64,000 nt of DNA. Source: Selaginella moellendorffii. Its lineage: Eukaryota; Plantae; Lycopodiophyta. The notes beneath the pieces were generated by a model. It was not told the origin of the DNA and ran no database searches. It saw only the letters and a program-made list of their open reading frames with translations. The position numbers were made by a program, and so were the translations under genes. This document shows, in pieces, positions 4,851-64,000 of the stretch (positions are counted from its first letter, which is position 1; every line of letters starts with the position of its first letter). The stretch lies in assembly GCF_000143415.4 (NCBI RefSeq), contig NW_003314272.1, positions 291,173 through 355,172 on the forward strand. Direction: 5' to 3'.

Positions 4851-5539
4851 TCCAGCTCTCGATTCTTGAGATGGATCACTCCTGATTGTTTGGAGTTCCT
4901 TTTGATTATGACGAAGAAAATAAAGAACTAGAAGTGAATCTAACAGTGTTGTTGTATAGCGCTAGGCACCGACAAGCAAAGCTCCTTGGCTTGGAAGCTA
5001 ATTGTCCGAATAGAAAACCTCTATTGATATTTTGAGTGAAATCCCACCGTCCGGAGCGTGGCCGTCCACGTATCGCGGTCGTTGCGAGGTAGATCGCTTT
5101 CACGCAACGACTTTCACATGACTACCTCACAAAGATCGTTAAAAGTATACAGTCGAGCTAATGATTTTTCACTAGGGATGCCACGTGGACTGGTCCTCCA
5201 CCAACCAGGTAAATGCTGGCGGTGCCAGCTCGTCTATCAGGAGGGCCTTGATTACATGGCCAGCTCAGCAACAAGGAATGCTCGCTATGGTGGGTGTTGC
5301 TTTCGTTTTGTTAGGGTTCTTGAGGCCGCGAGGAGGAAGGGCGCAGCTATGGTGCTGCTAGGGTTCCACGATTCCGAGCAAGGTGGGTCTCTGTTCTTGG
5401 AGGGGAGGAGGTAGCGAAGACGGCATTCCAGGCTGCCACATTCGCCGTGGTCTGGAATCGCTAGAAAGATTTCGTGGATTTTGGTGCGCTCTAGCTCCCC
5501 GCTTCTCTCCTCTTGCATTGCGGTGCTGCGCTCGTCACA

Positions 5540-8014
5540 ATGCCGTCGAGCCCGAATTATAGCGTCCGGGCGCGCAAGGTTGAGAAGATTTTCAAGCAGT
5601 TTGATGGCAACGGCGATGGCCGGCTCAATCGCGACGAGATGGCAGCGCTGGTGATTGCTGTGAATCCCCGGGTGAAATTCAGCGATGAGCAGATCAGAGC
5701 TATCCTGGACGAGGTGTTTCGGACCTATGGAGAGTTCATCGATGGCAAGAAGGGGCTCACTTTCGACGGGCTCTTGAGGACTTACGACGATGGCGCCGGC
5801 GACGTGGACAGGGATTTCGATGCGCTGGGCTTGCAGCTGGAGAAAGACGATGGTGCTGGAGCTGGGACGGATGTGGAGAGCGTGGGAGACGAGAGCAGGA
5901 GTAGCGAGCGAACGGGGCTATCAAAGGCTGGTGGCGTGGTCTCGATCATGGACGAGAGACCGGAGGCTGCAAGCACCAAACGCAGGCAGAATGTAGGTGC
6001 TTGGGCGGCTTCACCCAACAATGGGATTGTCTACGACGATACGTGGAGACTCGTGGAGGATCTGGAAATTCTGCTTCGACGAGCCGAGGCCAAGATCGAG
6101 GCACGGAGGAAAGCGAAGCTGAGCAGGAAGAAATCGTCGTCGGCTAATGGTGTGGATGTCTCCGGCCAGCTTGCGGGTGGTGACGAAGTCGTGAGAAGAA
6201 CCATGCACGACCTCGGGACGGAGTCATCGGTTTACCAAAAGGCTCTGGGAGATCTTCGCCAGAAAGCTGATGCTTCGAGAACGCAGGACGAGGCGTTTGA
6301 TGCACATATGGCCATGGGACGCTCGCTCTTTGATCACAAGTTCTACGAGGAAGCTCTGATCTGCTTCAAGAGAGCGACTGAGCTCCGGCCAACCGACGTG
6401 CGACCGCATTTTCGGACGGGCAACACTCTTTACTCGCTCGAGAAGTTTTTGGAAGCACGAGAAGCGTACGAGCTGGCCTTGGATGCTGCAAACACCGGAA
6501 ATCCTCAGTGGACCAATCTTGTTCCGCAGATCCACGTCAACTTGGGAGTTGCTCTGGAAGGCGAAGGCATGCTGCTGAACGCTTGTGAGCACTACAGAGA
6601 AGCAGCGATACTCCATCCTCCTCACTATCGAGCTCTTAAACTTCTGGGAAGCGGCCTGTATGGCGTTGGCGAATACAGAGCGGCAGAAAAGGCTCTCGGC
6701 GAAGCGATCTTTTTGAAGTCGGACTATGCTGATGCTCACTGCGATCTCGGGTCTGTTCTTCATGCTTTGGGGGACGATGAAAGAGCCATAGTGGAGTTCC
6801 AGAAGGCTATTGATATCAAGCCGGATCACATGGACGCACTGTACAACCTTGGAGGACTGTTGCGTGACACAGGGAGGTTTCAGAGAGCAGCAGAGGTTTA
6901 CTCGAGGGTGCTGTCTTTGAATCCTAGTCACTGGCAAGCGCAGCTAAACAGAGCGGTTTCTTTACTCGGTGCCGGTGATACCGAGGAAGCAAGGAAGGCG
7001 CTGAAAGAAGCCTTCAAGATGACAAACCGGGTCGAGCTTTATGATGCTATCGGCCACCTCAAGCACCTCCAGAAGAAACCGAAGGGACTGAATGGAATGA
7101 TCAAAGGTGCCCAGGATGTCGAGCGCAGCGACAGTGGCTTTGTCATCGCAGATCCGTCAACTTTCACAAGAGTTTCCAACAAAACGACACCTCGACCGTG
7201 GATTGCGCACGCTCTTAAGATCCGGGCTTTTCAGAAGCATACCAGGCTCCATCGCTGCAACCTCGCCAGCTTGAGCAAAGAGATGGCAAACAAACCATCG
7301 GCATCTCAAACAGCCGGTACAGCCGGGCACATTTCGGAGGCGCTCATACGCAAGGCAGATCTTGAGAAGTCTCTGAGGAGAATGCTCGGCTTCTTGCCAC
7401 CGACTACTTTCCAGTCGGCGGTGAAGGCAATCAACGAGAAAGTGCTGAGCGTGCTGGACAAAGTAGGCTCTGGTCGAGTGGACCTGGGAATGTTCTTGGC
7501 GACAATAGCACCGCTCTGCGCAGGTCCAGTCGACAAGAGGAAGCGGACGGCTTTCGACTGCCTGGTGCACCGATCGACCAAGGGACTGGGTGCCGAGATC
7601 GTCAAGTCGGACGCTAAAACGTACTTCAAGCACCTGCGAGCCATTTACTTATCCTCCGAGTCGACGAGCGAGCTGTGGGAAGTTCGTGGCGAAGACGAAC
7701 ACGCCAACATCTCGTATCCCGAGTTCGTGGAGATGTTTGACGACCGGGACTGGGCCTTTGGCGTTCTGCACACCGTGGTGAAGCTCGAGGCCGGGGACCG
7801 AGTTCGTCACAACGGGATAGCCTGCGCGGTGTGCTCGTATCCCATAACAGGTCCTCGTTTCAAGGAGACAAACGCCAACTTCAGCCTGTGCTCTACGTGC
7901 TACGGCGATGGAAAAGTCCCGGATCACCCCAAGCAGGAGAGCTACTCCTTCCGGGAGTACAACTCGGAGACGGACGCTGTCAAGGACAAGCTACGATTCC
8001 TCGGAAGGTCATAG
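5540..8014 (+). CDS. EF-hand + TPR + ZZ zinc-finger protein (At1g05150/At2g32450-like), intronless
   Basis: N-terminal EF-hand FDGNGDGRLNRDE, multiple TPRs (YADAHCDLGSVLHALG, HMDALYNLGG), and C-terminal CAVC...CSTC ZZ finger. Confidence 0.9.
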   Translation: MPSSPNYSVRARKVEKIFKQFDGNGDGRLNRDEMAALVIAVNPRVKFSDEQIRAILDEVFRTYGEFIDGKKGLTFDGLLRTYDDGAGDVDRDFDALGLQLEKDDGAGAGTDVESVGDESRSSERTGLSKAGGVVSIMDERPEAASTKRRQNVGAWAASPNNGIVYDDTWRLVEDLEILLRRAEAKIEARRKAKLSRKKSSSANGVDVSGQLAGGDEVVRRTMHDLGTESSVYQKALGDLRQKADASRTQDEAFDAHMAMGRSLFDHKFYEEALICFKRATELRPTDVRPHFRTGNTLYSLEKFLEAREAYELALDAANTGNPQWTNLVPQIHVNLGVALEGEGMLLNACEHYREAAILHPPHYRALKLLGSGLYGVGEYRAAEKALGEAIFLKSDYADAHCDLGSVLHALGDDERAIVEFQKAIDIKPDHMDALYNLGGLLRDTGRFQRAAEVYSRVLSLNPSHWQAQLNRAVSLLGAGDTEEARKALKEAFKMTNRVELYDAIGHLKHLQKKPKGLNGMIKGAQDVERSDSGFVIADPSTFTRVSNKTTPRPWIAHALKIRAFQKHTRLHRCNLASLSKEMANKPSASQTAGTAGHISEALIRKADLEKSLRRMLGFLPPTTFQSAVKAINEKVLSVLDKVGSGRVDLGMFLATIAPLCAGPVDKRKRTAFDCLVHRSTKGLGAEIVKSDAKTYFKHLRAIYLSSESTSELWEVRGEDEHANISYPEFVEMFDDRDWAFGVLHTVVKLEAGDRVRHNGIACAVCSYPITGPRFKETNANFSLCSTCYGDGKVPDHPKQESYSFREYNSETDAVKDKLRFLGRS

Positions 8015-9197: not shown

Positions 9198-11597
9198 ATG
9201 ATCGATCAGCTGGTCAACTTCGTAATTCGCCCTCCCAGGTGAGCAAATTCCCCCGCCGCGATTCCACTGCTCATCGAAATTCCTCTTTCTTTTGTCTGGC
9301 ACAGGGCGGATTATATGCCCTCCCATGATCTACTGGAGCGCGAGTTTGTGCTCAAGGGACATAGATACGAGCGTAAAGACTTAGAGGCAAGTTTGTTCGT
9401 TAAAATAGTTCTCGTCTTTATCATCTTTTGGCCGCGTTCTAAAAGCTTCCTTCGTCTCTTCTCTACGAGCAGATTACCAACAGTCGCGGCCACGTACTGC
9501 AATGCAGCCATTACAGACCACGTCCTCTACCGGAAGATGTCTCGCTTCCTTGCGTGATTTATTGCCATGGAAACAGGTTTGTCCAGAGGAATTTACTTCC
9601 ACTTCTTTATTCTTTGGCTGTGGTTTTGGCAGTGGGTGCCGAGCTGATGCAAACGAGGCTGCCATAATTTTGCTCCCCTCGAACATCACCGTCTTCACGC
9701 TTGATTTCTCTGGCTCGGGTCTGTCTGAAGGGAAGTATGTTAGCTTAGGCTGGAATGAGGTATGATCTATCATCTCCTTTGTTTTGTTTTTCCTGACTTT
9801 GATATTTTAGACTGATGATCTCAAGGCTGTTGTAACGCATCTTCGCAAGGACAAACAAGTCAGCCTCGTTGGTTTGTGGGGACGTTCGATGGGAGCTGTG
9901 ACCAGGTTTGTAAAAGCACGGTTTGCTGACAAGTTGGATTGACTTTCTTGGATATTGTTGTGCAGTCTTTTCTATGGAGCACAAGATCCATCCATCGCTG
10001 GGATGGTTCTGGATAGTCCATTTTCCAACTTGTTTGAGCTTATGCTAGAGCTTGTAGACGTGTACAAAATTCGACTTCCTAAGTTTACAGTAAGTGATGG
10101 TTTGCGTTGTGGCGGATGCAAAACTCGGTTTTCTTTGTATAGGTAAAGGTAGCTGTTCAATATATGCGGAGGCTAATCCTTAAGAGAGCTCAATTTGACA
10201 TTATGGACCTCGACGTTATAAAGGTTTGCTGAGCAAAGCAAAGAGTTCTTTAAGCTATGTACAGGAGTATTTTTGTGCTGTCAGGTAGCTCAGAAAAACT
10301 TCGTACCGGTGTTATTTGGTCATGCAACTGAAGACTTGTTTATTCAACCTCACCATTCAGATGCGATATTTAAGGCGTATGGAGTATGTTATCGTTTTCT
10401 CCTCTGAGTTATAACTTGGACTTGCAAAATTACCAGGGAGACAAGAACATCATTAAGTTTGAGGGAGATCACAACTCTGCCAGGCCCCAGTTTTATTACG
10501 ACTCAGTCACCATTTTCTTTTACAATGTGCTGCGTCCACCTAGCGAGACCTACGCGGAATCGGTGCCAGTTCCTGATCCTTTGTATTATGACGTAAACGG
10601 ATATGTCTTTGACGAGGACATTGATGAGGTAGTTTGCGCACGCTTGCCGTTTGAAGTCTGCTGACAAAAGGTTTTCTCGACTTTAGAACATGCTATACGA
10701 GATCATGAAGGGAATGCAAGCTGCAAACCCCAAGCCTGACGAAAATGGTGCAACATCGCAAGCACAACAAAGAGTCGTAGGAGGTACAATATTTTCTCCT
10801 TCACTGGACGAGAAGCATAAAGTTTTTATATTCAGGAGCCGCTGCTAAAACAGACTCCAGTTCTACGGAGGACGCCATCAATCAATCACGCTCTCGGTGG
10901 CAAATGAGTAGGACTGTTGTATGTAGTGTGCTGCTGCTCTTGTCATTTGGTGCTTGCATGATTAATTGTTCCTTTTCGCTTGCGCAGGTTCCTTACGACA
11001 ATACAGAGCAAGTAGAAGACGCTGCGGAGCTAATGAAGAGGATGGACCAATGTGGCGAGTCTGCCTCTTGTTTACATACTACTGAGGTTAGCTGCTCAAT
11101 AACTTAACTCTTCGTTGTCTAAAATCGTTTCTAAATTCTCCAGGCCGAGCAAAACGATGCCTGCTCCCGGTGCGTCTCCAGCTCCGTATCAAATGGCCTC
11201 GATGATTCGTGGCGAGGAGAAACCGGCTCGGATTCATTCCAAGTTTCACCCAGCTCGTCCGATGGCTTTGCCCACTTCCCATCCACGTTTGACGACGAAG
11301 AGAGGGTGAGTAGCGCTTGATCCTCGCGTAGCTAAGTTGGAGGCTCTTCAACTTTGTGTTTAAACGACTTTATACTCGCAGATGGTGATGGAAGCGATTG
11401 CTGCGTCTCTGGAAGAGATGAGCCTCCGATCCAAAGAAGCGGCGTCCAGGTCTCAAGGTGCTGCTGCTCCTGTTGCTGTTACTGCTGCGAGCCCAACAGC
11501 GTCGACGAGCAGTAAGCTCGAAACGTTTGGCCAAAGGCTGCGAAGTGGGCTGTTTAGAGGCATGAACAAACGAAGCAACAGCTCTCACTCCTCCTAA
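9198..11597 (+). CDS. Alpha/beta-hydrolase (YqkD-like plant family), multi-exon
   Basis: MIDQLVNFVIRPPR start, PCVIYCHGNSGCRADA, LDFSGSGLSEG, nucleophile LWGRSMGAVT and EGDHNSARP. C-terminal exons are less certain. Confidence 0.88.
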
Positions 11598-11821
11598 GAT
11601 GCTTGTATTTTTCTGTTGATCTTTTCACATTGATTTGATTTTTCACTGTAAAAATAATATCAGCAACTTTTGTGGAAAAGCTTAACTAAGTGATAATTAA
11701 ATTAGAATTCAATATCTTGCGATGGCGTCTCTGTGGCATGGCTTTGTTACTCTAGAATTATAAACTATGCCTCCGGTGGATCTCTTGCCTCCGGATGCCG
11801 GAGAGGGCCGGATTATGCAGT

Positions 11822-13513
11822 GAGTGAATTCCAGTAATTTCGGAGAGGGAAAAGCTAACTGGAAGTCTTGATTCCAGCCATCCAGTCAAGAACTGCCACT
11901 TTGCATGTCGTTTACTTATCATCGATTCTCTTTGATAGATTTTCTTTGCAAAAGAAGCTTTAGATCATGCCTCGCGCACTAAGTTTGTTCTTCTTCATTC
12001 TCTTGGAGGCTGCTGCGGTGACCTCTCCGCCAGTGAAGAATGAAACAGGTATATAACCATTTTCACAATCCCTTGTGTCCCATCTCAGATTCGCCTGCCT
12101 CCAATCGCAATTGTTTTCTATGATCTCAAGTCTTGATTGATGTTCCTGAAAAGATCGCATTCGCTTGCATGCTTTGGTATGCACATAGTTCTTCAATGTT
12201 TTTCCTTCCACAGTGATGGATACGACTGCTAAGCAACTGGATTCCAATTCCACTGCAAAAATTGCGAGATCTGAGTAAAATAATCCTATTTTGAAGACAA
12301 TATTCTTGACATGATCATGTTGTTATAGCAGCCAACCATCATCTCTGGTTCTGATATATGGATCCCATCTTGACTACATTTACGATTTTAATCCTTGACA
12401 TAGTGATCATAGGAAAAAAATCTAAATATAAATCCATTTGGCTGGGTCTTTAAAAAATGTTGTATAGCATCGAAATTATATTGATATAGGTTAATCATTC
12501 AAACTTAACAGCACTGGAGCACTCCCTCGATGTTCTAGATGCAATCGTCCAAAGTGCTATCTATTGAGACCCGTGATCGCAGCGGGCAGCCACGTTGATC
12601 CCAGGTGATGTTGAAGCATCACAAAACGAAGTTGGATGAGCATTCGAGGGGGACCTAACTCTATATGGATGCATCCTATACACTTATTAGTCCTCCCAGT
12701 CCAATGGTGCTGCCCATGGAATTGCTAACATCGATAGAGGCTTCAAACCGGATGTGCTGCAAAGGACTCTGTACATATCACTGCAAGATCGTTGTGTGAG
12801 AGATCCAAGCCAAATTTAATAAATGTGAGTTTTATGATTCTCGCGAGTGAATTCCAGTAATTTCGGAGAGGGAAAAGCTAACTGGAAGTCTGGTTTCCAG
12901 CCATCCAGTCAAGAACTGCCACTGTGCATGTCGTTTCACTGGTTGACCTTTCCCGGCAGTATATATATACAATCTCCACGCAAAACGCTGATCATATCAT
13001 CCATCTCTTTCTCACTTTGATAGATTTTCTTTGCAAAAGAAGCTCTAGATTATGTCTCGCGCACTAAGTTTGTTCTTCTTCGTTCTCTTGGTGGCTGCTG
13101 CGGTGACCTCTCGGCCAGTGAAGAATGAAACAGGTATATAAATCTCTCCAATCTCGACTGGAATTCGCCTATCTCCAACCGCAATTGTTTTCGATGATCT
13201 CTAATCTCGATTGAAGAACATCAAGTTCCTGAAAAATCCATGCCTACATTCGCTTGCATGATTTGCAGATTGTAGCTATGCAAAGTGTCACCTGGTTCTT
13301 ACGTGTTTACAATCGTTTTTTTCTTCCACAGTGATGGCTACAACTGCTAAGCAACTGGATTCGTCACCATCGTCCACGAGACCTGAGGTAACACAATCCT
13401 GTATTTTTTAAAACAGCATTCTTGACATTATCGTGTTGTTAATATAGCAGCCAATCATCTCTGGTGATCAGGAGCAGCAAGCCCATGTCGACTACATTTA
13501 CGATTTTAATCCT
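11822..13513 (+). repeat. Local direct duplication (~11822-12396 and ~12845-13513)
   Basis: Both copies start GAGTGAATTCCAGTAATTTCGGAGAGGGAAAAGCTAACTGGAAGTC and end GACTACATTTACGATTTTAATCCT. Confidence 0.9.
11967..12398 (+). CDS. Small secreted peptide precursor, phytosulfokine-like, copy 1 (70 aa)
   Basis: Exons 11967-12048, 12214-12274, 12329-12398 (GT-AG) give MPRALSLFFFILLEAAAVTSPPVKNETVMDTTAKQLDSNSTAKIARSDSQPSSLVLIYGSHLDYIYDFNP*. Confidence 0.62.
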
Positions 13514-13519
13514 TCATGA
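13052..13519 (+). CDS. Small secreted peptide precursor, phytosulfokine-like, copy 2 (69 aa)
   Basis: Exons 13052-13133, 13332-13387, 13448-13519 give MSRALSLFFFVLLVAAAVTSRPVKNETVMATTAKQLDSSPSSTRPEQPIISGDQEQQAHVDYIYDFNPS*. TATATATATA box at ~12960. Confidence 0.75.
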
Positions 13520-14228
13520 AACGAGGCATCAATAAGAGAGTGAAAGAAATTCTCATATATTTAATATAAATTTGTAAGGGTACTATCTAAATTTTTTTAA
13601 TTTGTATATATTTTAAAATATTAAAACGAAAATACAGTCTGGGTCTTAGCTAAACAATATGGAATAAATATTACAATAAATCTAATCTTCTTTCTAGATC
13701 AAATCTGATCTCATGAGCACTTTTGCAAGTTCAACTGTAACTATGGACTCCGTGATTTGAAGCTTGGTTCTGTCACAAAAAGATCTCCAAAAGTCAGATG
13801 AACAGCAAACAATATTCTTGAAAGCAAGGTGCCTTTTCCTTTTGCCCGTTTTCTTCTTCTCATCCAGGATTCTTGCCATGCTGAAAGCACGGCACTCTGA
13901 AAAACTTGTCATCTCCTAACATGAAAGTTGGCAAAACTGTACATCTCTCACACATTGGCCATCTTTTCCAGTGGGCAAGTCAGAAACTCCTCTTGGAAAA
14001 ATTTGGGTACTCCCAAAAGTCAATCCTCTCCCGGCTATAAGAATCGATCAATCTCAAAAGCTTTTGAGCAGCAAAGGGATCTTTCAGTGCCAATGGCAGT
14101 GAGTTACAAAGAAAAGCTCTCTAGATGGATTCTTAAGACCTGTCGTGGTATCTTTTGCAGGGATGAATCAGCTGGATCACTTCACACACGGATCGATCTG
14201 ATTTGGCAAAACTATAACAAGCACGAAG

Positions 14229-15945
14229 ATGGCGACCACCACCACCAACAAGAACGACCAGCTCAACGTTCTCGACGCGCTAGACACGGCCAAGACGCAG
14301 TGGTACCATGTCACGGCCGTGATCATCTCGGGGATGGGCTTTTTCACCGATGCCTACGATCTCTTTTGCATCTCTCTCCTCACCAAGCTCCTGGGCCGGA
14401 TCTACTACTACGACCCCTCCACTGGAACCCCGGGCGAGCTCCCAGTGAGCATCAATGCCGCCGTGAGCGGCATCGCGCTGTGCGGCACCTTCACGGGCCA
14501 GCTCTTCTTCGGCTGGCTGGGCGATCGCCTGGGCCGCAAGAGAGTCTACGGCATCACCTCCATGATCATGGTCGTCTTCTCCATCGCCTCGGGCTTCTCG
14601 TTTGGATCCAGCGCGCGTGCAGTCATCGGCACGCTCTGCTTCTTCCGCTTCTGGCTGGGATTCGGAATTGGCGGCGACTACCCGCTGTCCGCGACGATCA
14701 TGTCCGAGTACGCCAACACCAAGACGCGGGGGGCGTTCGTGGCGGCGGTGTTTGCCATGCAAGGCGTGGGGATCTTGGTGGCGGCCGTGGTGACCATGGC
14801 GGTGTCGGGGGTGTTCATGGTGGGATTCAAAGCCCCCAGCTTCGAGGAGAGCCCCGGGCTGTCCACGCCGCACGAGGCCGACTACGTGTGGAGGATCGTC
14901 TTCATGCTGGGCAGCGTCCCGGCGGGGCTCACGTACTACTGGCGGATGAAGATGCCCGAGACCGCGCGGTACACCGCGCTCGTGGCCGGGGACCTTGACC
15001 GGGCAAACGCCGACATGAGCAAAGTCCTCCAGGTCGACCTCACGGACGATCACCATCGTGGCGTTGATCATCAGGTACTTTGGCCTCCATTTTCCTTAAC
15101 GTTTGTTCTTTGGCTTGAAACAGTTCAAGATTGCTAAGAAGGTCCAGGCTCAATCATCCTTCCCGCTCTTTTCATCACGCTTCGCGAGGAGACACGGCCT
15201 CCACCTCTTCGTCACTACCACCACCTGGTTCCTCCAGGCCTTCGCCTTCTACAGCCAACAGCTCTTCCAAAAGGACATTTACACCCAGGTGGGATTCATC
15301 AAGCCCGCCAAGACCATGTCTGCACTCCAAGAGGCGCTGGTCACTGCGAGAGCGCAAGCCCTGGTGGCACTGTGCGGGACGGTCCCGGGCTACTGGGTCA
15401 CCGTTGCGCTCATCGATCGATTGGGCCGCAAGCCCATCCAGCTCCTTGGCTTCCTCATGATGGGCACTTTCATGTATGCTCTGGCCGTCCCCTACGAGAG
15501 CTACTGGCGGGGCAAACACCTGGACGCCGCCACTGGCAAATACCAAGGCGGCCACAACGTTGGCTTCGTGGTGCTCTTCGCGCTAACATTCTTCTTCGCC
15601 AACTTTGGACCCAACAGCACCACCTTCATCGTCCCCGCGGAGGTGTTCCCCGCGCGGCTGCGCTCGACGTGCCACGGCATCTCCGCAGGCGTGGGCAAGC
15701 TTGGGTCCATCCTGGGCGCCTTTGGCTTCGTCTACGTGTCACAGCCCACCAGGAAATCCGAGCTCCCACGGGGATACCACCACCCGGGGATTGGGATGAG
15801 GAACGCGCTGCTGCTGCTGGCCAGCGCCAGCATGCTGGGCTTCTTCATCTCGCTGCTCATGCCGGAGACCAAAGGTAAGAGCCTTGAAGAACTCTCTGGT
15901 GAAAGCGTCATGAATGAAAGCAAAGTTGATGTTCAGAGTGTTTAG
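14229..15945 (+). CDS. PHT1: PHT1-family phosphate:H+ symporter (MFS), one intron starting at 15075
   Basis: [14 protein letters not shown], signature [28 protein letters not shown], and [31 protein letters not shown]. Confidence 0.96.
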
Positions 15946-42163: not shown

Positions 42164-45100
42164 TTAATGAATCTCACCTTGAACCCGGGTTATGAATGCT
42201 CTTGCTGCATCTCTTGCATGGTCTGGCAAGGTGATGGTGGCACTCTGCTTTCGCATCCAACCATGCACAACATTATCCACCGATATGCTCATGCTGGGAT
42301 CCCTTGGATTCAGCACCCATCTCTTTTCTAGGCAATCCTTCGTATATCCGGAACTTGGCTTGAACCACTCCACAGTTACATTGAAGGAGTTAGTTTCTGC
42401 GTCCTCCTCTGCATCAGTGATGCAGCGCCCCACCCATATCATTTGTTTTTTATTACTGGGTCTGACAAGCACGACCATTCCTTTGCAGACCTGAACTGGA
42501 TTGAATGCTGAATCCGGCTTCTTGTTCCTCGGCCCACAATAGTGATCCTCAACATCGTTATCTGTCATTGCATTTCCAGAGGACATTGTTCCGCTACTAT
42601 CTGGTGCTCTGGGTTCTGGCCAAAAGGACTCTTCCAATTCTTCATATACAACCGGCCCATTTTGGATAGCAGATATAATCTTCTCCCAGTATTCGAGCAA
42701 AGGCTTGCACCTCTTAAAATAGGATTCTCCACCAAACACCAACCCCCTCTTCCAGAAGGCAATATGCTATCTAATCCCGGCCACTATACTTTCCTGGTCT
42801 TTGAGTCCATCCGGGTGCATCGGCCGTGGGGAACCCTGAGGAATCATAGGTTCCCCAGTTATGGGATCTCTCTTGAAGAGTTCAATGCCATCCACTGGCA
42901 GCCACACTGTGTCCCATTCTCTCATCTTGTACCTCATCACTGGAGCACCGTCACGCATGCTGAAATGAAACTGAAGAGGCTTGGAGTGGCCAATCAGCGT
43001 TTCGGATCCATCCCTGATGTAGCCTCTTACAAACCCCTTAAAGTCTGGAACCTCTGTCACAAGTGCAGCTTCAACAGTGCCTTTGATGCAATTTTGGAAT
43101 TCATCGTAGAGTTGTGGGAGGGTGAGGACATTGGATCGCCGGAGGGACTCTGCCAGGTGACTGAACATGGCATCGACGTTTTCATGAGTGTGCCCAACCA
43201 TGAGAAAGCCAAGTGTAACCGTTTCAAATATGCCTTTGGCAACAAGCATCGCCAAGTACGCAAAGACGTACATGTTTTTGTTCTCATTGCCAGCATTGTC
43301 TGTTTGGAGCAGAAGATGGGGTGGAAGGCCACATTGGCTGCAAGAACTTCCTTGAGATTCTACTTCGTTTGGATGAGGCTGTGCATTCACCGGGCGACCA
43401 GCCTCGTCGGAATGGCATGAGGCCTCATGTGATAACCCTACAATCTGACGGCCAACATATTCACTGGGATGGCATGGGGCCCCACGTGATACTGCAAGCC
43501 TTTGCTCCTCCTCCAGCTGAACCCTGTATGGGGTTCGATCGACAAGGGCCTTATGCAAGGGTTGGCCGTTCAGCTCAGTCTGCGCACTTTGCAGAGACCT
43601 TAAGTGTTTTGCTAGGGACGCAATCATCATGTTTGCACCCCCGCCACCCCATAGAGGTACAAAGAAGTTCCCATAGTTCTGGGCACCATGCCCATGAGCG
43701 ATTATGCCAAACAGAGACACAGGCAGCTGCATGGATGAAGAGATTGCCTTGGGGGCAGGATTGAGTCGAGGTAAGCACGTCTTTTTCTGGTCCATTTTGT
43801 CGTGGATGATGCAGAGGTAAGAGTCAGGTCTCTCCATGGAGAGAATCCTGTTATGATAATATGCAGTCCTGCAGCTTCTCTGCTCGATGTTGTGGTCGAG
43901 CCGCCTTCTAACCAACGTCTCTCGCTCTTGAGCGCTACAAGAATTCTTCGACAAAGCCATTTTGATAGCAGTGCACTCGTCACACTTTGAAAAGCTGGAG
44001 TACTTTCCTATACTCACATCCCTAAACCTGTTGCTCCACAATCTACTAAATCTAGATTGGCTCAGCTTCCTGTAGCCATTACTCTGGAGTTCCCGATTCA
44101 CATCTTCCAATATGGCCCCTTTGGTATACATGGAAGGGAGAACTCGTTGGGTGTCTCGTGTTCCATCTTCCAAGAGGCGGGTTTTATGTGGTTGCTGCTC
44201 GCTACATGTGTCGACAAACCTCTTGAAGATTGCCTCTCCATATACAACATGACCCCTGGTTTTGTGCGTACCGTCGTTCCCATGGACTGCCTGTTGAACC
44301 CTTTGTTCCTCGAACTCAGTTTTGATTTTGTAGAATGTGCTTCGAGGGACTCCATAAATGATTCTCCATGCCTTCATGCAGACCAAACCCCTCTGGAAGA
44401 CCATGCCCCCCACCTGATGTTCTGAAGCATCAACAGATGACCGTAATGCCTCATACACAAAATTGCGAGCTGCCTTCCAGGACAATGTCTTGTATCTTGC
44501 TCTCTCCTCTTCAATAGCATCCCAATCAGCATGTTGCCAGCACCTCCTCTTGCAACAAGCAACTGTCGAGACCATTCGAACCTCCATCGCCATTTTCTGC
44601 CTTTTCGGTTCGTTGCTCAGATCCCTTTGGCTGTGCTGTAGGAAGGTGTACTTTCTTTTCCCATGAAGAGATGTTCTGTCATCAGTTGTAGTGGTGTTTG
44701 ATTGTGAATCTTTCACATTCTCAAACACTAAATGCCTCAATTTCCACCGCACAATGCTTCCAATAGTCAGACTGTTTTCTTCTGTGTCAACAACCTCTAA
44801 AATCGCAACTCCAATATCATCCCAGCCCAATTCTTGATTAGCAACCGCATCTCTTGGATCGACAACTGTGGCTAAGCCCTCAGCTACCACCTCCCCCTCG
44901 GGGTTGTTTAGAAACACCTTTGCCTGAATCCGTGTAGCACGGTTCTTAAGATCCACGGAGGGAACATGCGTCGCACTTGCGCTGTCCCCAACATCTGCTT
45001 TCTTCTGCAGATTTTTCAAGGCAACAACAACATTTATCCCGACGACAATCTCGTTCAATAGCGACCACATTCCCATCGAAGACAGTCTCTACTGATACAG

Positions 45101-47758: not shown

Positions 47759-50700
47759 ATGGTAAGTCTTTTAGGCCAAGTAGAAAATGGCATGAGGCCA
47801 CTGTAAGCGACTAAATTTTCCATTCTACTTTAGTCACTTAACCACACCTTCGACCCCTTGGAGGAGTCTTATTCACAACCTCCATCAGTCCAATTCAGGA
47901 CTTGGGACTTGCTAGCCCCAAGAATGGCATCCCTGCCACTCAACACTTGCACCTGGTCCAAGTGCTCCACGTGTCCGGTCCCAAGACCGACACCCAAAGG
48001 TACCACTGACATCTCGGCCCATTACGCTAAGGCCAAGCCCATTCACCTTTGCTGCACTAGTGGTCCAACACCACTTGCATCACCACCTCGTCTCTCCAAG
48101 ACTGGGCCATGTGTCCACAAGTGGTCATCCTAGATCCACTCCTTAGCATCCTTAGGATGCCCATAGACCTGGGGAATCGCCTTCCCCAAAGTCCCTTTGT
48201 CAGTTCCTACCAAGTCCCTTTCTGCCCCTGGCCGTGTTTGCCAACACTGCCACTGGATCGAGGCCCACAGGCCCGACCACTAAGTCCCACGGTCCTCTGG
48301 GACTTCCTCACCACACGACTGTGTCCTTGGTCACTACCCCAGAGGACTGCTCCTCTTCCTTTCCACAGTCTGGGCCTTTGGGACGACATTTCGGAACACC
48401 GTGGCCTTACGCGAGCCACCTGGGTACTCTCCCCACCTATCGCCTTTAGGTGCTCTAGCCATGGGCTTAGAGCGAGGTTCCGTTGAGCCACGCCTGGTAT
48501 CCAAGTAGGTAGTGCCACCCACACTTGGACTGGGAGCATCGGCCAGTCGATCTCCCGGGGGAACTAGAGCCGGCTCTTGAACACTTCACCAAGCTACCCC
48601 GCTTGTCGGTCCGTATTCACTCTAGTCTTGGACTTCCCAGTGGTCAGTTCATCACCCAACACTGGGTCTGGCCTTCCTGGGCCAAACTGGCCTTTCCTGG
48701 CCAAACTGGCTCCACTGCAGTCCTCCCCCTACGATACTTTTGGAGCTCACCAAACCCCCCAGGGTCTGGGAGACGAACGCTTTGGGCTTTCACCCTCTCA
48801 GGCTCCGGACTCGGACTTGGACTCGGACTCGGACTCGGACTCGGATTCGGACTCGGACTCGGCCTCGGGCTCGGTCTCGGCCTCGGCCTCGGTCTCGGTC
48901 TCGGTCCCGATCTCGGTCTCGGTCTCGGTCCCGGTCTCGGTCCCGGTCTCGGTCTCGACTTCGGACTCCATCTCGGACTCCATCTCGGACTCCATCTCGG
49001 ACTCCATCTCGGACTCCATCTCGGGTCCATCTCGGACTCCATCTCGGACTCCATCTCGGGTCCATCTCGGACTCCATCTCGGACTCCATTTCGGGTCCAT
49101 CTCGGGTCCACCTCGGACTCCATCTCGGACTCCATCTCGGACTCCATCTCGGGTCCATCTCGGACTCCACTTCGGACTCCAACTCGGGTCCATCTCGGGT
49201 CTACCTCGGACTCCACTTCGGACTCCATCTCGGACTCCATCTCGGGTCCATCTCGGACACTCCCACATGTCATGTGTTGGTCCTTTTGGGTCTCTTTTTG
49301 GAGCCTCGCCTTTTGCTCGCTTCGTGCTTGTTCCTCGAGCACTTCGTTGGGAGTTCCACTCCCGCTCTTGACTTTTCAAGTCGGAGCTTTTGGTCCAAAC
49401 GTGTTACGCTCGTTTGGCTCTCGCTTCGGCCACTACCATGTGGCGCCCTTCCGGCTCCACTTTGGGGCCTAGGGATTTTGTGTCTCACAACTCCACCACC
49501 CATAGACGAAGTTCGATGTCCTCATCGAACGGTAAACCCTTTCATAAAGTAACACCCACACGTGTTACCATTTCCATCCTTGGCACCTAGCCAATCTTTG
49601 TCTATGGTTTGACACCAAAGGCTCACCATGCCTTGTCCATCCTTTAAGGAGCGTAGTCTCGCCAACTTAGAGACTGATTGGACCACATGTAATGGTTCTC
49701 TTCTTTTATAGGTTTAGTTCTCGCTAAACCTCTTAGAGACCCTTCTCTAAGTCAATCCCACTACTCCTCGAGTAGTCTCAATTTCCATCGATATAACCTT
49801 TGCACTTTGGAACTTTGAATTTTGACTTCTTGGAGTCAATTTCCTAGGTGTCTCCGACACCTTGCCTTGCACCTTTTGTGCAACTCCACTTCCCATTCTA
49901 GGAAGTTCTCTACTCGAGGGCACCATCATCCTCTCTTCTATTTCGTGCCAAAGTTCCAGTTATCATACTTTGTGCTAGGGCTGTTCATGGCCCTATCATT
50001 TGGCTACCTTACCGCTCCCTCCCTTGGAGCTTCCACTTTCGCCAAATCGGAGCATTTCGGAATCCATCCTTGGAAACACACTTCCTTTCCCGCAATTTGT
50101 TAGCGTCCAACACATTAGTGTTCCTCGCCTAACTTTGTCACTTGGATTCATTCCAAGGGATTCCACGGCCCTATCTTGGCCACTCATCTTTTGCTCCTAT
50201 CCGTTGATTGTTGCACCAAGCAACATCGAATCTCTACCTCTCTCCTTGAGGTATTCTTTTGATTCCATAGCAAAGGCTCTACTTTGCCAAGACTAGGGTG
50301 TTCATCCCTAGTAAGTCTCTTTTAGCATCTTCTGCTGTGGGCTCTATCCTCGGCCCAACTTTGTGACCCTCTCATGGGTCTCTTTAGAGACTACTTTCCT
50401 TGGACACACTATGCTATCGCAATGACATAGCTCATTTCCCTAAGGTGCTTTTCCCACTTGGTCACCTTGACCAAGCCACACCATCATCAATAGTTCAAAT
50501 CAACACTTTGAACTAGGAACCTTATTCTTTAACCCAAATAAGGACCTTGTCGTTATTTAGCCACAAGATCACCTAGTGATCTCACCTTGGCACCTTAACA
50601 GAGTTGCCAAGAGCTACTTGGTCTTCTAGACCTCCAAGTTGTTGACTATAACCCCGGGGGCATCCCCCACACTTGGCGGTGCACCCAAGCTAGCCCTTAC

Positions 50701-53700
50701 GGCCAAGGGTTCATAGCAACTGAGATTAGATGTCCCCATCTCACTCACCACGACCTTGGTGCCACTTGCACCAAAGCGTTCAAGTTAGATATGCCGAGCT
50801 TTCACACTAAGCAATCTAACCGTGCATCACAACTCCGAGGCATCCCTCGCTTGGTGGTGTGCCCAAACCAGTCTCCTCATTGAGAGTCCATGACCACCGA
50901 AATATGAGTGTCCTCATATTCCAAACCATCACCACGCCCTAATGATTTGGGACTCGAACCCAAGCACTAGAGGGTCGGGACTCGAACCCAACCTCCGTAT
51001 ATGCATTTACGGACGGCATCACACAAGATGCCTGGCGTGACTCCCCACGCCGGTGCACCAACTTATTTTGAAAGTGCGCTACAGATCACAGCTGAGGAAC
51101 CTAGTTCCTCCACACTACCAAGTCCTCTCACTTGACATGTCTGTGATCATGCATGGATTCCTCCATGCTCGGCCCCATGGCCCACCCTTTTTGAAGTTAT
51201 CACCTTCATCTAGGGTATTTGTTCCCCCGACGTGCCAATCTCGCTTGGCAAGTCCTCCGACCACTGTAACATGGTTCCTGCATAAGCGTGAAAGTCCTTG
51301 ACCATCGACTTTCGTTCAAAGCCCTCTCTTTGAACACTTGGGAACTACTTCCCTAACCTTGACAGCTGTGCCTCATGGCAAGCTTCAAGACCACGCTTCT
51401 GCTGTGTCACTCTGATTTCGCGCGTTCTATGAACCATTTACACTTGGCCTTTCTAGGTACTAAGCTACCTAGAATCGTCTTCGGGAACCTTGAAGGGACT
51501 CTGTCCCTTAGCTTGCTAAGCCCTCCCTTTTTGCAAGCTTTCCAATTGCCACATAGTCTAACATGGACAATTCCATATTTTAGACTCTCCATGGCATCAC
51601 AGTTGCTAGCGGCAACACCCTCGAGCCCCCACTTGATTCTCCACTCCCAGCTGGCATAACCAACCTCGGTTATGCCCTTCGATTCCTATGGTTCGGTTCT
51701 ACCCCCTTACTTCTTGCTTTTGGCTTCACACCTTTCCTTCGGTCATTCTCCTCCAGACCAGGAGGATAGCTTTGCACTTTCTATCATGCCTTAGCAAGTA
51801 TTCTTAGGGATGAACCTACCCGATAGCCTAGGGAGTGGTTCCTCAATCCGGGTATGCTCACCTTATAATCCCACACACTGGGATTACATTGTTACTTATG
51901 GGCCTTTACATGCCCATCACTAGCCTTGCCAAAATTCCCTTTTTGGCTTTGTCCAACTCGGGTAGACAGTCCTCTCCTGTCTCCGCAACCTTGGACATTT
52001 GGATAGCACCTTCTATCCATCATTCGCTAGGGACTTAGTCCCTTGGGCTTTATCCATTGCCCTCGCGACATCAAACACCATCTTCTGGTGTTCTAAAGTG
52101 TCCGGGTGTCCCAATGATGGCTTTCTTGACAATGAGTATTTCCTTTTATGACATTGACTTACTATATCACAACACAAGCAACTTATCCCCCTTAAGGGTA
52201 TATCCAACTTCCTTATGCTATTAAGAAGTCTTGGGTAGCTACCTTCTACCCGTTTAACCAGTTATTTTGCACCTCTTGCTTAGTTGCCTCATAGTTGTCA
52301 AGTCCTACAACTCATTGCTTGGTGCTTTCACACCTCCATCATTATCTGGGTCACCACACTCCAACTGCATGCTCTGCAGCTTAGGCTATGCCATTCCCAT
52401 TTCCATTGGGATTCCTTTGGCAAGGGGTTCTCATGAACCCACCAACATAGCCTCAAGGTATCACACCTTGGCACATTTGGTGTCTCCACACCATCGGCTC
52501 CACGAGCCTACCTCTATGACATTTCCCTTTCGTGTCTAAGTCTTTGCCAAGACCAACACTGCTCTTTCTCATGCCAACCATCCGTTAGCACTGCCCCATA
52601 GAGGTCACACACAACTTTATATCAAAGTTGTTTTCTTCTGGGAACACCTCTCCCATAACTTTAGCATGGCACATTTTGCCATCGATGAGATACCCTCTAT
52701 TCTCATCCTTGGATCCTATGATCCCCCCCCATCCTTGGTGGGGCACAACACACCTCAGTCCAAATGCTTCCATCAGTCCTTCTAGGACCATCCCTTGACT
52801 CTACTTGAGTCATCATGCAGTTTTGGACTTGGTTAATCCACAGACCCGTAAGGTCTTACTTGTGAGGCACTAGCTCACTGGAATACACTTCTTGCATTCC
52901 TGTCCTACTCAAAAGGACTATTTTCCCAAGTGTTACTTCGACACTTGATTTTGTTCTCTGGGGGCAACTTTTGCCCCTTAGCACTACTTGTCCATGCGAT
53001 GAGAATACCACTCATCTCTAAGTACACCCCCCAACTCCTTGGGTTGTTCCAGCATTTAGTAAAGGTAGCCCCGGCTACCATTTCAAGGACTTAAGTCCTC
53101 TTCCGTATTTGACCTTCCACGGTCATTACCTTTGGTCTCACATTCATGAGCACCAACCTCAACTATATGAGGAAAACCTTCCACTGTTCCCAAGATCCCA
53201 AAGTCGTTCCATTATTGGCCCTTTTCTATCCACCACCTCCTCTACAAGTTCACACATGAACTGTAATGGAGAGCCATGTCTTCCCGACTTGCTACTCCTC
53301 AAGGATAGGCCCACTCCTCGGACCTTCCGATGCCAACATTAGTGGTGATATACTTGAGCACCAATAAAAGTCGGACTAAGGAACAGCTCTGATACCAAGT
53401 TGTAAGCGACTAAATTTTCCATTCTACTTTAGTCACTTAACCACACCTTCGACCCCTTGGAGGAGTCTTATTCACAACCTCCATCAGTCCAATTCAGGAC
53501 TTGGGACTTGCTAGCCCCAAGAATGGCATCCCTGCCACTCAACACTTGCACCTGGTCCAAGTGCTCCACGTGTCCGGTCCCAAGACCGACACCCAAAGGT
53601 ACCACTGACATCTCGGCCCGTTACGCTAAGGCCAGGCCCATTCACCTTTGCTGCACTAGTGGTCCAACACCACTTGCATCACCACCTCGTCTCTCCAAGA

Positions 53701-56700
53701 CTGGGCCATGTGTCCACGAGTGGTCATCCTAGATCCACTCCTTAGCATCCTTAGGATGCCCACAGACCTGGGGAATCGCCTTCCCTAAAGTCCCTTTGTC
53801 AGTTCCTACCAAGTCCCTTTCTGCCCCTGGCCGTGTTTGCCAACACTGCCACTAGATCGAGGCCCACAGGCCCGACCACTAAGTCCCATGGTCCTCTGGG
53901 ACTTCCTCACCACACGACTGTGCCCTTGGTCACTACCCCAGAGGGCTGCTCCTCTTCCTTTCCACAGTCTGGGCCTTTGGGACGACATTTCGGAACACCG
54001 TGGCCTTACGCGAGCCACCTGGGTACTCTCCCCACCTTTCGCCTTTAGGTGCTCTAGCCATGGGCTTAGAGCGAGGTTCCGTTGAGCCACACCTGGTATC
54101 CAAGTAGGTAGTGCCACCCACACTTGGACTGGGAGAATCGGCCAGTCGATCTCCCGGGGGGACTAGAGCCGGCTCTTGAACACTTCACCAAGCTACCCCG
54201 CTTGTCGGTCCATGTTCACTCTAGTCTTGGACTTCCCAATGGTCAGCTCAGCACCCAACACTGGGTCCGGCCTTCCTGGGCCAAACTGGCCTTTCCTGGC
54301 CAAACTGGCTCCACTGCAGTCCTCCCCCTTACTATACTTTTGGAGCTCACCAAACCCCCCAGGGTCTGGGAGACGAACGCTTTGGGCTTTCACCCTCTCA
54401 GGCTCCGGACTCGGACTCAGACTCGGACTCGGACTCGGACTCGGATTCGGACTCGGACTCGGGCTCGGGCTCGGTCTCGGCCTCGGCCTCGGTCTCGGTC
54501 TCGGTCCCGATCTCGGTCTCGGTCTCGGTCTCGGTCCCGGTCTCGGTCCCGGTCTCGGTCTCGACTTTGGACTCCATCTCGGACTCCATCTCGGGTCCAT
54601 CTCGGGTCCATCTCGGACTCCATCTCGGACTCCATCTCGGACTCCATCTCGGACTCCATCTCGGACTCCATCTCGGACTCCATCTCGGGTCCATCTCGGG
54701 TCCATCTCGGACTCCATCTCGGACTCCATCTCGGGTCCATCTCGGACTCCATCTCGGACTCCATTTCGGGTCCATCTCGGGTCCACCTCGGACTCCATCT
54801 CGGACTCCATCTCGGACTCCATCTCGGGTCCATCTCGGACTCCACCTCGGACTCCATCTCGGGTCCACCTCGGACTCCACTTCGGACTCCATCTCGGGTC
54901 CATCTCGGGTCCACCTCGGACTCCACTTCGGACTCCATCTCGGACTCCACCTCGGACTCCATCTCGGGTCCACCTCGGACTCCACTTCGGACTCCATCTC
55001 GGGTCCATCTCGGGTCCACCTCGGACTCCACTTCGGACTCCATCTCGGACTCCATCTCGGGTCCATCTCGGGTCCACCTCGGACTCCACTTCGGACTCCA
55101 TCTCGGACTCCATCTCGGGTCCATCTCAGACTCCACTTCGGACTCCAACTCGGGTCCATCTCGGACTCCACTTCGGACTCCAACTCGAGTCCATCTCGGA
55201 CACTCCCACGTGTCATGTGTTGGTCCTTTTGGGTCCCTTTTTGGAGCCTTGCTTTTTGCTCGCTTCGTGCTTGTTCCTCGAGCCCTTCTTTGGGAGTTCC
55301 ACTCCCGCTCTTGACTTTTCAAGTCGGAGCTTTTGGTCCAAACGTGTTACGCTCGTTTGGCTCTCGCTTCAGCCACTACCACGTGGCACCCTTTCCGGCT
55401 CCACTTTGGGGCCTAGGGATTTTGTGTCTCACAACTCCACCACCCATAGACGAAGTTCGATGTCCTCATCGAACGGTAAACCCTTTCATAAAGTAACACC
55501 CACACGTGTTACCATTTCCATCCTTGGCACCTAGCCAATCTTTGTCTATGGTTTGACATCAAAGGCTCACCATGCCTTGTCCATCCTTTAAGGGGCGTAG
55601 TCTCTCCAACTTAGAGACTGATTGGACCACATGTAATGGTTCTCCCCTTTTATTGGTTTAGTTCTCGCTAAACCTCTTAGAGACCCTTCTCTAAGTCAAT
55701 CCCACTACTCTTTCTCGAGTAGTCTCAATTTCCATCGATATAACCTTTGCACTTTGGAACTTTGAATTTTTGACTTCTTGGAGTCAATTTCCTAGGTGTC
55801 TCCGACACCTTGCCTTGCACCTTTTGTGCAACTCCACTTCCCATCCTAGGAAGTTCTCTACTCGAGGGCACCATCATCCTCTCTTCTATTTCGTGCCAAA
55901 GTTCCAGTTATCATACTTTGTGCTAGGGCTGTTCATGGCCCTATCATTTGGCTACCTTACCGCTCCCTCCCTTGGAGCTTCCACTTTCGCCAACTTGGAG
56001 CATTTCGGAATCCCTCCTTGGAAACACACTTCCTTTCCCGCAACTTGTTAGCGTCCAACACATTAGTGTTCCTCGCCTAACTTTGTCACTTGGATTCCTT
56101 CCAAGGGATTCCACGGCCCTATCTTGGCCACTCATCTTTTGCTCCTATCCGTTGATTGTTGCACCAAGCAACATCGAATCTCTACCTCCCTCCTTGAGGT
56201 ATTGTTTCGGTTCCATAGCAAAGACTCTTCTTTGCCAAGTCTGGAGGATGTTCACCCCTAGTACGTCTCTTTAGCATCTTCTGCTATGGGCTCTATCCAC
56301 GGCCCAACTTCGTGACCCTCCCATGGGTCTTTTATAGAGACTACTTTCCTCGGACTCACTATGCCATCGCACGGACATAGTTTATTTCCCTTTGGTGCTC
56401 TTCCCACTTGGTTATCACGACCAAGCCACACCACCTTAAACAGTTCAATTTCAACATTTTGAACCAAGAACTTCATTCCTTAGCCAACCAAGGACCTTGT
56501 CCTTATCTGGGCATAAGATCACCTAGTGATCTCACTTTGGCACTTTAACAGAGTTGCCAAGAGGTACTTGGTCTTCTAGACCTCCAAGTTGTTGACTATA
56601 ACCCCGGGGGCATCCCCCACACTTGGCGGTGCACCCAAGCTAGCCCTTACGGCCAAGGGTTCATAGCAACTGAGATTAGGTGTCCCCATCTCACTCACCA

Positions 56701-62700: not shown

Positions 62701-64000
62701 GTCCAATCGTGTTACGCTCATTTGGCTCTTGCTTCGGCCACTACCATGTGGCGCCCTTCCGGCTCCACTTTGGGGCCTAGGGATTTTGTGTCTCACAACC
62801 ACATACCATTCAGTAGCAACATTGGCATGCACCGATTGGGCTCTCGAGTGCAGTCCGGTTACAGATGGCGTGTAGCCTCACGCCATCTTAGGATGCAGCG
62901 TCAAGACATCTGATGCAGTGGTGAATGGCGTGTGGCCTCACGTTATTTCCAGCTACTAGCTTTTCATCTGTCAGCTCTAATTGTTGTGCATTTCTGAACA
63001 GGCGAGGAATTGTGTTCTTCTTCCAGCCACTGTCAATGTGGATGCAGAGAAGGGGGAGGAGCTCACCAGTTGGACTTTTGGGATGGAAGGCGAGGATCTG
63101 AGGCTGTACAACACAGATAGTGGGAGAAAAGAATGCATGGGGATCCTCATCCAAGTGACAGACACTCCATGCAGTTCCATGCAAGAATATAGACTGGCAC
63201 TTGTGGTAGAGACAGCGTCTGCCTTCAAGATCCACCTTGCACATCCTAGCGGCTTCCCGGAGGGGGGCAGCGGCTATGAGGAATTCCTAGAGGGAGCTAG
63301 GGAGAGGTTGTCCAGGAGGCCCACAATTTCAAAGACGCTGCGGGTCTATGAAGATCACATGGAATCCACGGACCTCACCTACGGCGATGTTCAAAAACTA
63401 TATTCCAACATTGAGCCGTTGAGAGTGACTCCAGTTCGCGAAGCAAAGGGGAAGGGCGTCGATCTGGAAACTACCTCGAAGCAGAAAAGGGTGGTCAAGC
63501 TCAAGCCGACGTCCGACTCTCCTGCTCCAAAAAAGAAGCTACTCAGTGATGCCATTGCCTCGGGTTCGAACACTACACCCACCAAAAAGAAGAGCCGCAA
63601 AGAGCAGAAAGAACAAGAAGAGGCAGCAAAAATCGTCGCAGATAATAGTACTTGTTACTATTCCAACAAAGTATATACAATCGACATGAGCCGTATCGAC
63701 ATCCAAAGCAAATACAACCACAGGCTAGTATCTGATGAGTGGGTGGAGAAACTGAAGCAGAAGATGCTGGCAAGTCCAGTAACACCCGACATCACAGACG
63801 TGATCCCCTACTACCGAACAATGAAGGGCGAGACGAGGTTTCCAGACTTGATCAATAGGAAGGTGTTGGACGATCAGAACATCCGGTTCTATGCCGTCTC
63901 CGGGCAGCATTCTAGCTTGGCGATGCAAGAGATAGTTGTGGATATTATGGTGGGCGAGGAGGTGAAGAAAGTCTTCAAGACAAGAGTTGTCCGCCTGATA
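47759..64000 (+). CDS. ParB/Srx-like domain protein; exon 1 coding part is only ATG, exon 2 is 63002 to window end
   Basis: ATG|GTAAGT at 47759-47767 with TATA-like CTATAAG at ~47663. Acceptor TTTCTGAACAG at 63001, then 333 stop-free codons: ARNCVLLP...PAPKKK...YTIDMSRIDIQSKYNHRLVSDEWVEKLKQKML...FYAVSGQHSSLAMQ. Confidence 0.68.
47802..62797 (-). mobile_element. Compound LTR retroelement array: LTR-int-LTR-int-LTR-partial LTR
   Basis: LTRs 47802-49489, 53401-55433, 59488-61508 and partial 61509-62797. tRNA-iMet PBS at 53386-53397 and 59473-59484. Outer flanks GCCAC / ACCAC. Confidence 0.93.

Follow-up and report, generated by a model that had tools for sequence, protein, structure and literature searches.

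The lycophyte Selaginella moellendorffii carries, in a 64-kb stretch of contig NW_003314272.1 (64,000 nucleotides, hereafter the window), a tandem pair of small genes whose predicted secreted products end in the motif H-x-DYIYDFNP, which resembles the core of the peptide hormone phytosulfokine (PSK). Both genes, named copy 1 and copy 2, have three exons (Table 1). Splicing by script gave a coding sequence of 213 nucleotides (nt) and a product of 70 residues for copy 1, ending in SHLDYIYDFNP followed by the stop codon, and a coding sequence of 210 nt and a product of 69 residues for copy 2, ending in AHVDYIYDFNPS followed by the stop codon. GT-AG boundaries are present at all four introns, the lengths of which are 165 nt (copy 1) and 198 nt (copy 2) for intron 1, and 54 nt (copy 1) and 60 nt (copy 2) for intron 2. 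In addition, a tandem acceptor (tatag/cag) is located at exon 3 of both copies, where use of the second AG drops one codon and keeps the frame.

A preliminary description of this DNA had proposed two hidden GT-AG genes of three exons encoding 69-70 residues, and both models were reproduced base for base. The arrangement it had described, with a signal peptide, a variable Ser/Thr-rich middle and a conserved C-terminus, is present in both copies, and the 24 nt coding for DYIYDFNP are identical between them, whereas the introns are only ~78% identical. The pair was indeed missed by the track of open reading frames (ORFs), as no mechanical ORF of at least 40 residues extends over the exons of either copy. 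A six-frame translation of the window contained no DY[IV]Y outside the two copies; no further copies or fragments were detected in the window by blastn, tblastn or a motif scan, and no public protein derived from copy 1 or copy 2 was found in the protein collections searched.

Table 1. Features of the window and of the paralogous locus L001 (positions are those of the window unless L001 is given; a slash within lower- or upper-case letters marks a cut)
Feature	Position	Strand	Description
Copy 1, 92-nt upstream block	11822-11913	+	97% identical to the copy 2 block, 96% to the L001 block
Copy 1, exon 1	11967-12048	+	Start codon, signal-peptide-like region, NET site; phase 1 donor CAG/GT
Copy 1, exon 2	12214-12274	+	61 nt, variable pro-region; 1 base short of the paralogue's
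Copy 1, exon 3	12329-12398	+	SHLDYIYDFNP and stop; motif codons 12372-12395
Degenerate remnant of P0001 third exon	12475-12548	+	81% identical to L001 10678-10755
Copy 2, 92-nt upstream block	12845-12936	+	Two exact matches of the 40-nt core in the window, 0 expected by chance
Copy 2, TATA-like run	12960-12969	+	~85 nt upstream of ATG; weaker form in L001
Copy 2, exon 1	13052-13133	+	Signal-peptide-like region
Copy 2, exon 2	13332-13387	+	56 nt; in-frame 6-nt deletion relative to the paralogue
Copy 2, exon 3	13448-13519	+	AHVDYIYDFNPS and stop; motif codons 13490-13513
L001, upstream block	L001 9781-9866		
L001, third gene	L001 10001-10082, 10265-10326, 10385-10450		Same build as copies 1 and 2
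TPR/EF-hand gene	5513-8014	+	Upstream flank of the pair
PHT1-type inorganic phosphate transporter	14229-15945	+	~700 nt downstream of the pair; matches PDB 9kmq, E = 2.8e-109
Purple acid phosphatase gene at the paralogue	L001 7713-9726	+	275 nt upstream of the L001 gene

Homologues were sought by word-indexed searches with copy 1 and copy 2, and by an exhaustive phmmer search with copy 2. The sole true public protein match was P0001, the hypothetical protein SELMODRAFT_409681 [Selaginella moellendorffii] of 113 residues. Another candidate, P0002, was rejected as spurious, since it is a 1630-residue protein of the bacterial repeat type whose APVISGD...SFTP repeats mimic the query. The locus of P0001, L001, lies on scaffold GL377576.1 among different neighbours, and it aligns to the window only over the gene unit of ~1 kb. 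It holds a third gene with the same splice sites as copies 1 and 2, a coding sequence of 210 nt and a product of 69 residues that ends in AHVDYIYDFNP followed by the stop codon. These genes form a small family in S. moellendorffii, consisting of the tandem pair in the window and at least one copy on GL377576.1.

The public model for P0001 (L001 10001-10968) uses exons 1 and 2, skips the DYIYDF exon and continues into downstream sequence. If this structure were the true one, the family would consist of exons 1-2 and a downstream exon, and the DYIYDF exon would be intronic or an alternative terminal exon; the sharing of exons 1-2 by P0001, followed by different downstream sequence, is what such a structure would give. 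However, the P0001-type frame in the window counterpart, which lies between copies 1 and 2, meets a stop after ~19 codons, and no counterpart was detected 3' of copy 2. The P0001-type structure is thus not conserved in the window, because the remnant is degenerate and interrupted by the stop. The extra downstream part of P0001 matches no Pfam domain, whereas the DYIYDF exon is conserved in all three copies. We ruled out this exon structure for the window genes on the basis of the stop-broken, 81%-identical and domain-less counterpart, and consider it highly improbable as the true build of the family. One source labels P0001 'Pectinesterase inhib...', which is not backed by any Pfam match. The comparison of the loci shows that the public annotation of S. 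moellendorffii misses or mis-joins the whole family of three-exon mini-genes.

The signal peptides were judged by a heuristic check, not by SignalP. All three proteins start with Met-x-Arg (Arg3), followed by an uncharged hydrophobic run; this run is 17 residues long in both copy 2 and L001, whereas in copy 1 it is broken by a Glu and reaches 10 residues. Candidate signal-peptidase cleavage positions with small residues, AAA/V and VTS/R, are found in each of the proteins, as are a pro-region of net acidic charge and a conserved N-glycosylation sequon (NET) that spans the junction of exons 1 and 2. Copy 2 and L001 also share ISGD.EQQAHV, and the conservation between them spans DFNP and about ten residues upstream. 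The layout generic to modified secreted peptides, in which a conserved signal peptide and a conserved C-terminal motif enclose a fast-evolving middle, is seen among the paralogues.

Conservation among the three copies

The three gene units were aligned, and identity was scored for each segment, with the introns taken as the neutral rate and binomial p values calculated against the intron rate. The pairwise identities were 68-79% for the introns and 57-87% for the variable parts of exons 2 and 3. In contrast, they reached 91-96% for the signal-peptide exon (exon 1), 90-93% for the last ten codons (H-x-DYIYDFNP), and 96-97% for the 92-nt block upstream of the TATA region. The excess conservation over the introns corresponded to p = 2e-5 (copy 1 versus copy 2) and 1e-9 (copy 2 versus L001) for exon 1, and to p = 4e-7 to 7e-11 for the upstream block.

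For copy 2 and L001, exon 1 is 96% identical, with one non-synonymous and two synonymous differences, and the last 57 coding nt differ at two sites, compared to 17 expected at the intron rate (p = 4e-7). For copy 1 and copy 2, the absence of any difference in the 24 motif nt has p = 0.003 at the intron rate. The only change within DYIYDFNP in the family is a synonymous one, TAC to TAT, in L001, whereas the x of H-x-D is Leu or Val across the copies. The lengths of exon 2 (61, 56 and 62 nt) and exon 3 (70, 72 and 66 nt for copy 1, copy 2 and L001, respectively) vary; despite these indels, the coding sequences, at 213, 210 and 210 nt, are all multiples of three and free of stops. The Nei-Gojobori pN/pS ratio between copy 2 and L001 is 0.32.

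If no gene were present and the ORFs had arisen by chance within a local duplication of non-coding DNA, tiny exons and a lack of transcript evidence might also be seen, and the free choice of GT and AG allows many spliced ORFs. However, the introns of the three copies have diverged by 22-30%, yet the splice sites, the frame, the ORF and the C-terminal eight residues are kept in all three, and divergence in the exon and promoter blocks is far below that of the introns. Chance ORFs are thus scarcely credible. The exons, the motif and the promoter are better kept than the introns and the frames are intact; therefore, the copies are best taken as real genes under selection. The mosaic of conserved patches at the presumed functional parts is better explained by purifying selection on a coding gene than by chance or gene conversion, and these comparisons show a pattern of purifying selection on the predicted signal peptide, the C-terminus and the putative promoter. 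We are fairly confident that these are genuine, selected genes for secreted peptides.

The upstream block is more conserved than the coding sequence among the three members and contains three TTCCAG/CTGGAA units. The possibility that it is an RNA gene was rejected, as it has no match in Rfam and folds no better than shuffled sequence (z = -0.03). The block is probably a cis-regulatory module shared by the family.

A proposed PSK-type signal weighed against its rivals

The explanation that we favor, with a probability of roughly 0.6, is that the family encodes secreted prepropeptides of ~70 residues, that the product is the C-terminal H-x-DYIYDFNP, and that it acts as a PSK-type signal. PSK-alpha is YIYTQ, and the variants YVYTQ, YIYTN and YVYTN occur. 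By analogy with PSK, a cleavable signal peptide would direct co-translational entry into the endoplasmic reticulum and would then be removed, and the middle of the precursor would serve as a spacer that is free to vary, leaving the extreme C-terminal H-x-DYIYDFNP as the functional product. TPST in the Golgi would sulfate the Tyr that follows Asp, and probably also the second, Asp-flanked Tyr; the Asp-Tyr context, together with the further Asp that follows the second Tyr, would favor this. A protease cut near His/Asp would release a peptide of 7-8 residues (sY-I-sY-D-F-N-P), with little or no C-terminal trimming, and the secreted peptide would act as an extracellular signal on a PSKR-type island-domain leucine-rich repeat (LRR) receptor kinase. 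What we infer here, by this analogy, is that the genes are expressed, that the product is sulfated, processed and perceived by a receptor, and that it is homologous to PSK. A sulfated PSK-type ligand as the product is a tentative proposal, to which we give somewhat less than even odds. In the fullest version, the YIYDF genes would encode a lycophyte phytosulfokine, disulfated as sY-I-sY-D-F(-N-P) and recognized by a receptor of the PSKR clade, and the family would be co-regulated through the near-invariant 92-nt module; this version is rather doubtful.

Several observations weigh against the PSK-type reading, and they concern copy 1, expression and the resemblance to PSK. In copy 1, ~62 nt including the TATA-like run are deleted. 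Exon 1 of copy 1 is 95% identical to that of copy 2, but all four of the differences in its 82 nt are non-synonymous, including the Glu in the hydrophobic core, and the Nei-Gojobori pN/pS of copy 1 against either other copy is 0.79. For the RNA data, no reads fell on positions 11750-13750 out of ~9.2 million from each of two runs labelled S. moellendorffii, in an assay that had no control stretch. The contigs from two other runs that cover the locus are unspliced, have a depth of 2-3 and are DNA-like; one of them ends exactly at the donor of copy 2 exon 2 (13387), which was taken as a coincidence. The spliced product of copy 2, in either acceptor form, has no exact match on record. Absence from the protein collections says nothing about expression, because the spliced product of the L001 paralogue is lacking there as well.

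As to the resemblance, PSK (PF06404) was the only one of 24,736 Pfam models to touch either window protein, and the match, at 9.9 and 10 bits (E ~2), did not reach the 25-bit gathering threshold. The alignment covers the eight residues HxDYIYDF alone, at model positions 75-82 of 88. H-x-D-Y-I-Y is present in all three copies, but T-[QN] at positions 4-5 of the PSK pentapeptide is replaced by D-F in each of them, so that the Thr-Gln of PSK is missing. As the preliminary description had stated, the Cys pair and the dibasic (RR) site of seed-plant PSK precursors are also lacking, there being no Cys and no K/R pair in any of the three proteins. The Selaginella genes, moreover, have three exons. 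Neither 1.84 billion cluster representatives nor 5.8 billion proteins, among which unannotated mini-genes would be invisible, yielded a relative outside this genome.

The state of copy 1 and the RNA result could also be explained if one or both copies were silent relics, copy 1 especially being a decaying duplicate, and little or no peptide came from the pair. The loss of the TATA-like run, the Glu, the pN/pS of 0.79, the frameshifted variable region and the absence of reads would all agree with this. In copy 1, the loss of 1 nt at the end of exon 2 shifts the frame; however, a loss of 2 nt in exon 3, relative to copy 2 and L001, restores it just before the motif, so the two indels compensate each other. 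Furthermore, exon 1 (4/82 nt) and the motif (0/24 nt) of copy 1 have been far better kept than its introns, which are 22% divergent. In copy 2, the promoter block and the TATA-like run are intact and pN/pS against L001 is low, and the RNA result lacks a control. Silent relics are a possible but, in our judgment, unlikely account of the pair as a whole.

For copy 1, constraint looks relaxed: the motif is still in frame, and evolution elsewhere would be near-neutral. With its TATA-like run lost and its evolution near-neutral, copy 1 is therefore probably weakly expressed or decaying. Its sequence is read as that of a gene that was long constrained and is now relaxed or differently regulated, rather than that of an old pseudogene, and, by the same comparisons, copy 2 is the better-preserved gene. 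The earlier reading of the pair was right that both genes exist, but had overlooked the apparently relaxed constraint in copy 1 and the near-invariant promoter block.

Alternatively, the genes could be real genes for secreted peptides, with a convergent likeness to PSK. The product would then be a lineage-specific signal or some other secreted product, for instance a defence peptide, or else the conserved C-terminus would be a sorting or retention tag; it would not be a PSKR ligand and might be unsulfated. The six residues in common with PSK (H-x-D-Y-I-Y), a Pfam score of 10 bits against 25, and the joint absence of the Cys pair, the dibasic site and TQ would be consistent with convergence. 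So would the conservation within the family over DFNP and the ~10 upstream residues (ISGD.EQQAHV in copy 2 and L001), which PSK does not have, and the fact that surveys do not report PSK in S. moellendorffii (PMC8462819, PMC13091385). However, a conserved His at -3, an x that varies, and Asp-Tyr-Ile-Tyr no more than eight residues from the C-terminus of a 70-residue secretory precursor make up the layout of PSK, and this layout is unlike those of PSY, RGF and CIF. Convergence is thus considered fairly unlikely, and the PSK-type signal is retained as the preferred reading.

The preliminary description had proposed an undescribed, PSK-like sulfated hormone. The genes, the precursor layout, the conserved motif and the novelty stand, whereas the comparison with the Pfam PSK model, at ~10 bits versus a cut-off of 25 bits, did not bear the proposal out. 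Conservation of the motif in paralogues, on which the proposal had been staked, is found in the third paralogue, which keeps DYIYDFNP with one synonymous change. The motif was not found described in the searchable literature, as had been claimed: 'YIYDF' occurs in one unrelated paper only, and no literature linking PSK-like genes to Selaginella was found. The YIYDF family appears to be undescribed.

Surroundings of the two loci

The pair is flanked by a TPR/EF-hand gene and a PHT1-type phosphate transporter gene, with tubulin and 2OG-dioxygenase genes further out in the window, and a purple acid phosphatase gene lies next to the third copy at L001. Both family loci thus adjoin genes of phosphate economy, while their flanks are otherwise unrelated; this theme was noticed post hoc and may be a coincidence. 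Because of it, PHR1 sites (P1BS, GNATATNC) were sought in the three promoters, and none were present.

About 860 nt upstream of copy 1 lies a 67-residue ORF (10904-11107, +) that begins like a signal peptide, contains several Cys and matches no Pfam model, and that could belong, as an exon, to a further gene for a small secreted protein. At 48500-62900, similar blocks with long overlapping ORFs on both strands (~48.5-49.5, 54.1-55.5, 60.2-61.7 and 61.8-62.9 kb) exhibit strong negative GC skew and weak matches to Pro-rich (PARP-like) Pfam models, and resemble an array of repeats, either of low-complexity sequence or of repeat elements. An ORF of 769 residues at 42767-45076 (-) carries the Pfam domain DUF7869 (E = 4e-42), a domain associated with transposon-derived proteins.

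Comparison with PSK and other sulfated peptides

PSK precursors share with the Selaginella family the organization of small secretory prepropeptides with a variable middle and the active motif near the C-terminus. In both, the motif contains H-x-D-Y-I-Y, in which His lies at -3, x varies and the first Tyr is preceded by Asp, and PSK genes, like those of Selaginella, are multigene, with tandem copies occurring. In contrast, only Asn-Pro(-Ser) follows the motif before the stop in Selaginella, whereas AtPSK1 is cleaved as AHTD/YIYTQ/DLNL (PMC13157962). The signal peptide, by the heuristic check, is of the kind expected of PSK precursors, and the length of 69-70 residues is slightly below the ~80-120 residues typical of them. 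On the criteria tested, formal membership in the PSK family fails for these predicted proteins, and PSK-like is a working name that we infer from sequence; the link to PSK is made because of H-x-D-Y-I-Y alone.

PSK is a central peptide in plant growth and immunity, the origin of which is unsettled. It has been called 'largely restricted to vascular plants' (PMC13157962), and a 2026 survey describes it as a vascular-plant innovation (PMC13091385). Taken together, surveys place PSK in seed or vascular plants, with doubtful candidates in bryophytes and none for Selaginella (PMC8462819, PMC13091385). Furumizu et al. (2021) reported TPST in S. moellendorffii, but their PSK-like candidates came from P. 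patens, M. polymorpha and P. abies only, and those of the bryophytes lacked the Asp (PMC8462819). Receptors of the island-domain LRR-RLK-Xb class, to which PSKR belongs, are reported from land plants generally (PMC10834447). The window adds to this picture two further members of a family, the first analysis of selection within that family, a candidate cis-regulatory block common to its members and one copy apparently in decay. A selected H-x-DYIYDFNP family in a lycophyte would be a concrete, testable candidate for a PSK-type ligand that is either early or alternative, and it would serve as a natural experiment to show which pentapeptide half is required by the receptor. If it were a lycophyte PSK, PSK signalling would reach back to the vascular plants' common ancestor or earlier, and the sY-I-sY half would be fixed while the C-terminal half was free to co-evolve with the receptor. 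It would also mean that the Thr-to-Asp form, which was thought to be a nematode invention, exists in a plant.

For the bryophyte PSK-like candidates (MpPSK with YIYTSQ, and those of P. patens; PMC8462819), the situation is similar in that they come from non-seed plants, share the YIY core only and are untested. However, the Selaginella family keeps His-x-Asp-Tyr and is changed in the C-terminal half, whereas the bryophyte candidates lack Asp before the first Tyr.

For the root-knot nematodes, a bioRxiv preprint describes PSK-like genes of a theta class with DYIYDN and an omega class with DYVYDN, and RNA interference against them impaired parasitism (PMC13081851). These peptides resemble the Selaginella family in the Thr-to-Asp change after the second Tyr, in the order of signal peptide, variable pro-region and C-terminal motif, and in their clustered copies. 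They differ in being animal effectors, in having Asn instead of Phe as the last residue and, for the omega class, in bearing a GGR amidation signal. The nematode DYIYDN shows only that Asp is tolerated at that position in such genes. If the Selaginella family is accepted as PSK-like, it would be a plant case of the Thr-to-Asp form.

For PSY, RGF/GLV/CLEL and CIF/TWS1, the likeness lies in secreted precursors with an Asp-Tyr sulfation site, which is putative in Selaginella. In PSY, RGF and CIF, whose sulfation depends on TPST, the DY opens a Pro-rich mature peptide of 13-21 residues that often ends in HN or N (PMC8462819). The Selaginella proteins have six residues (IYDFNP) after DY, among them a single Pro and, at +2, a second Tyr. 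They do not fall within the PSY, RGF or CIF families, because the DY of those families opens a long Pro-rich peptide.

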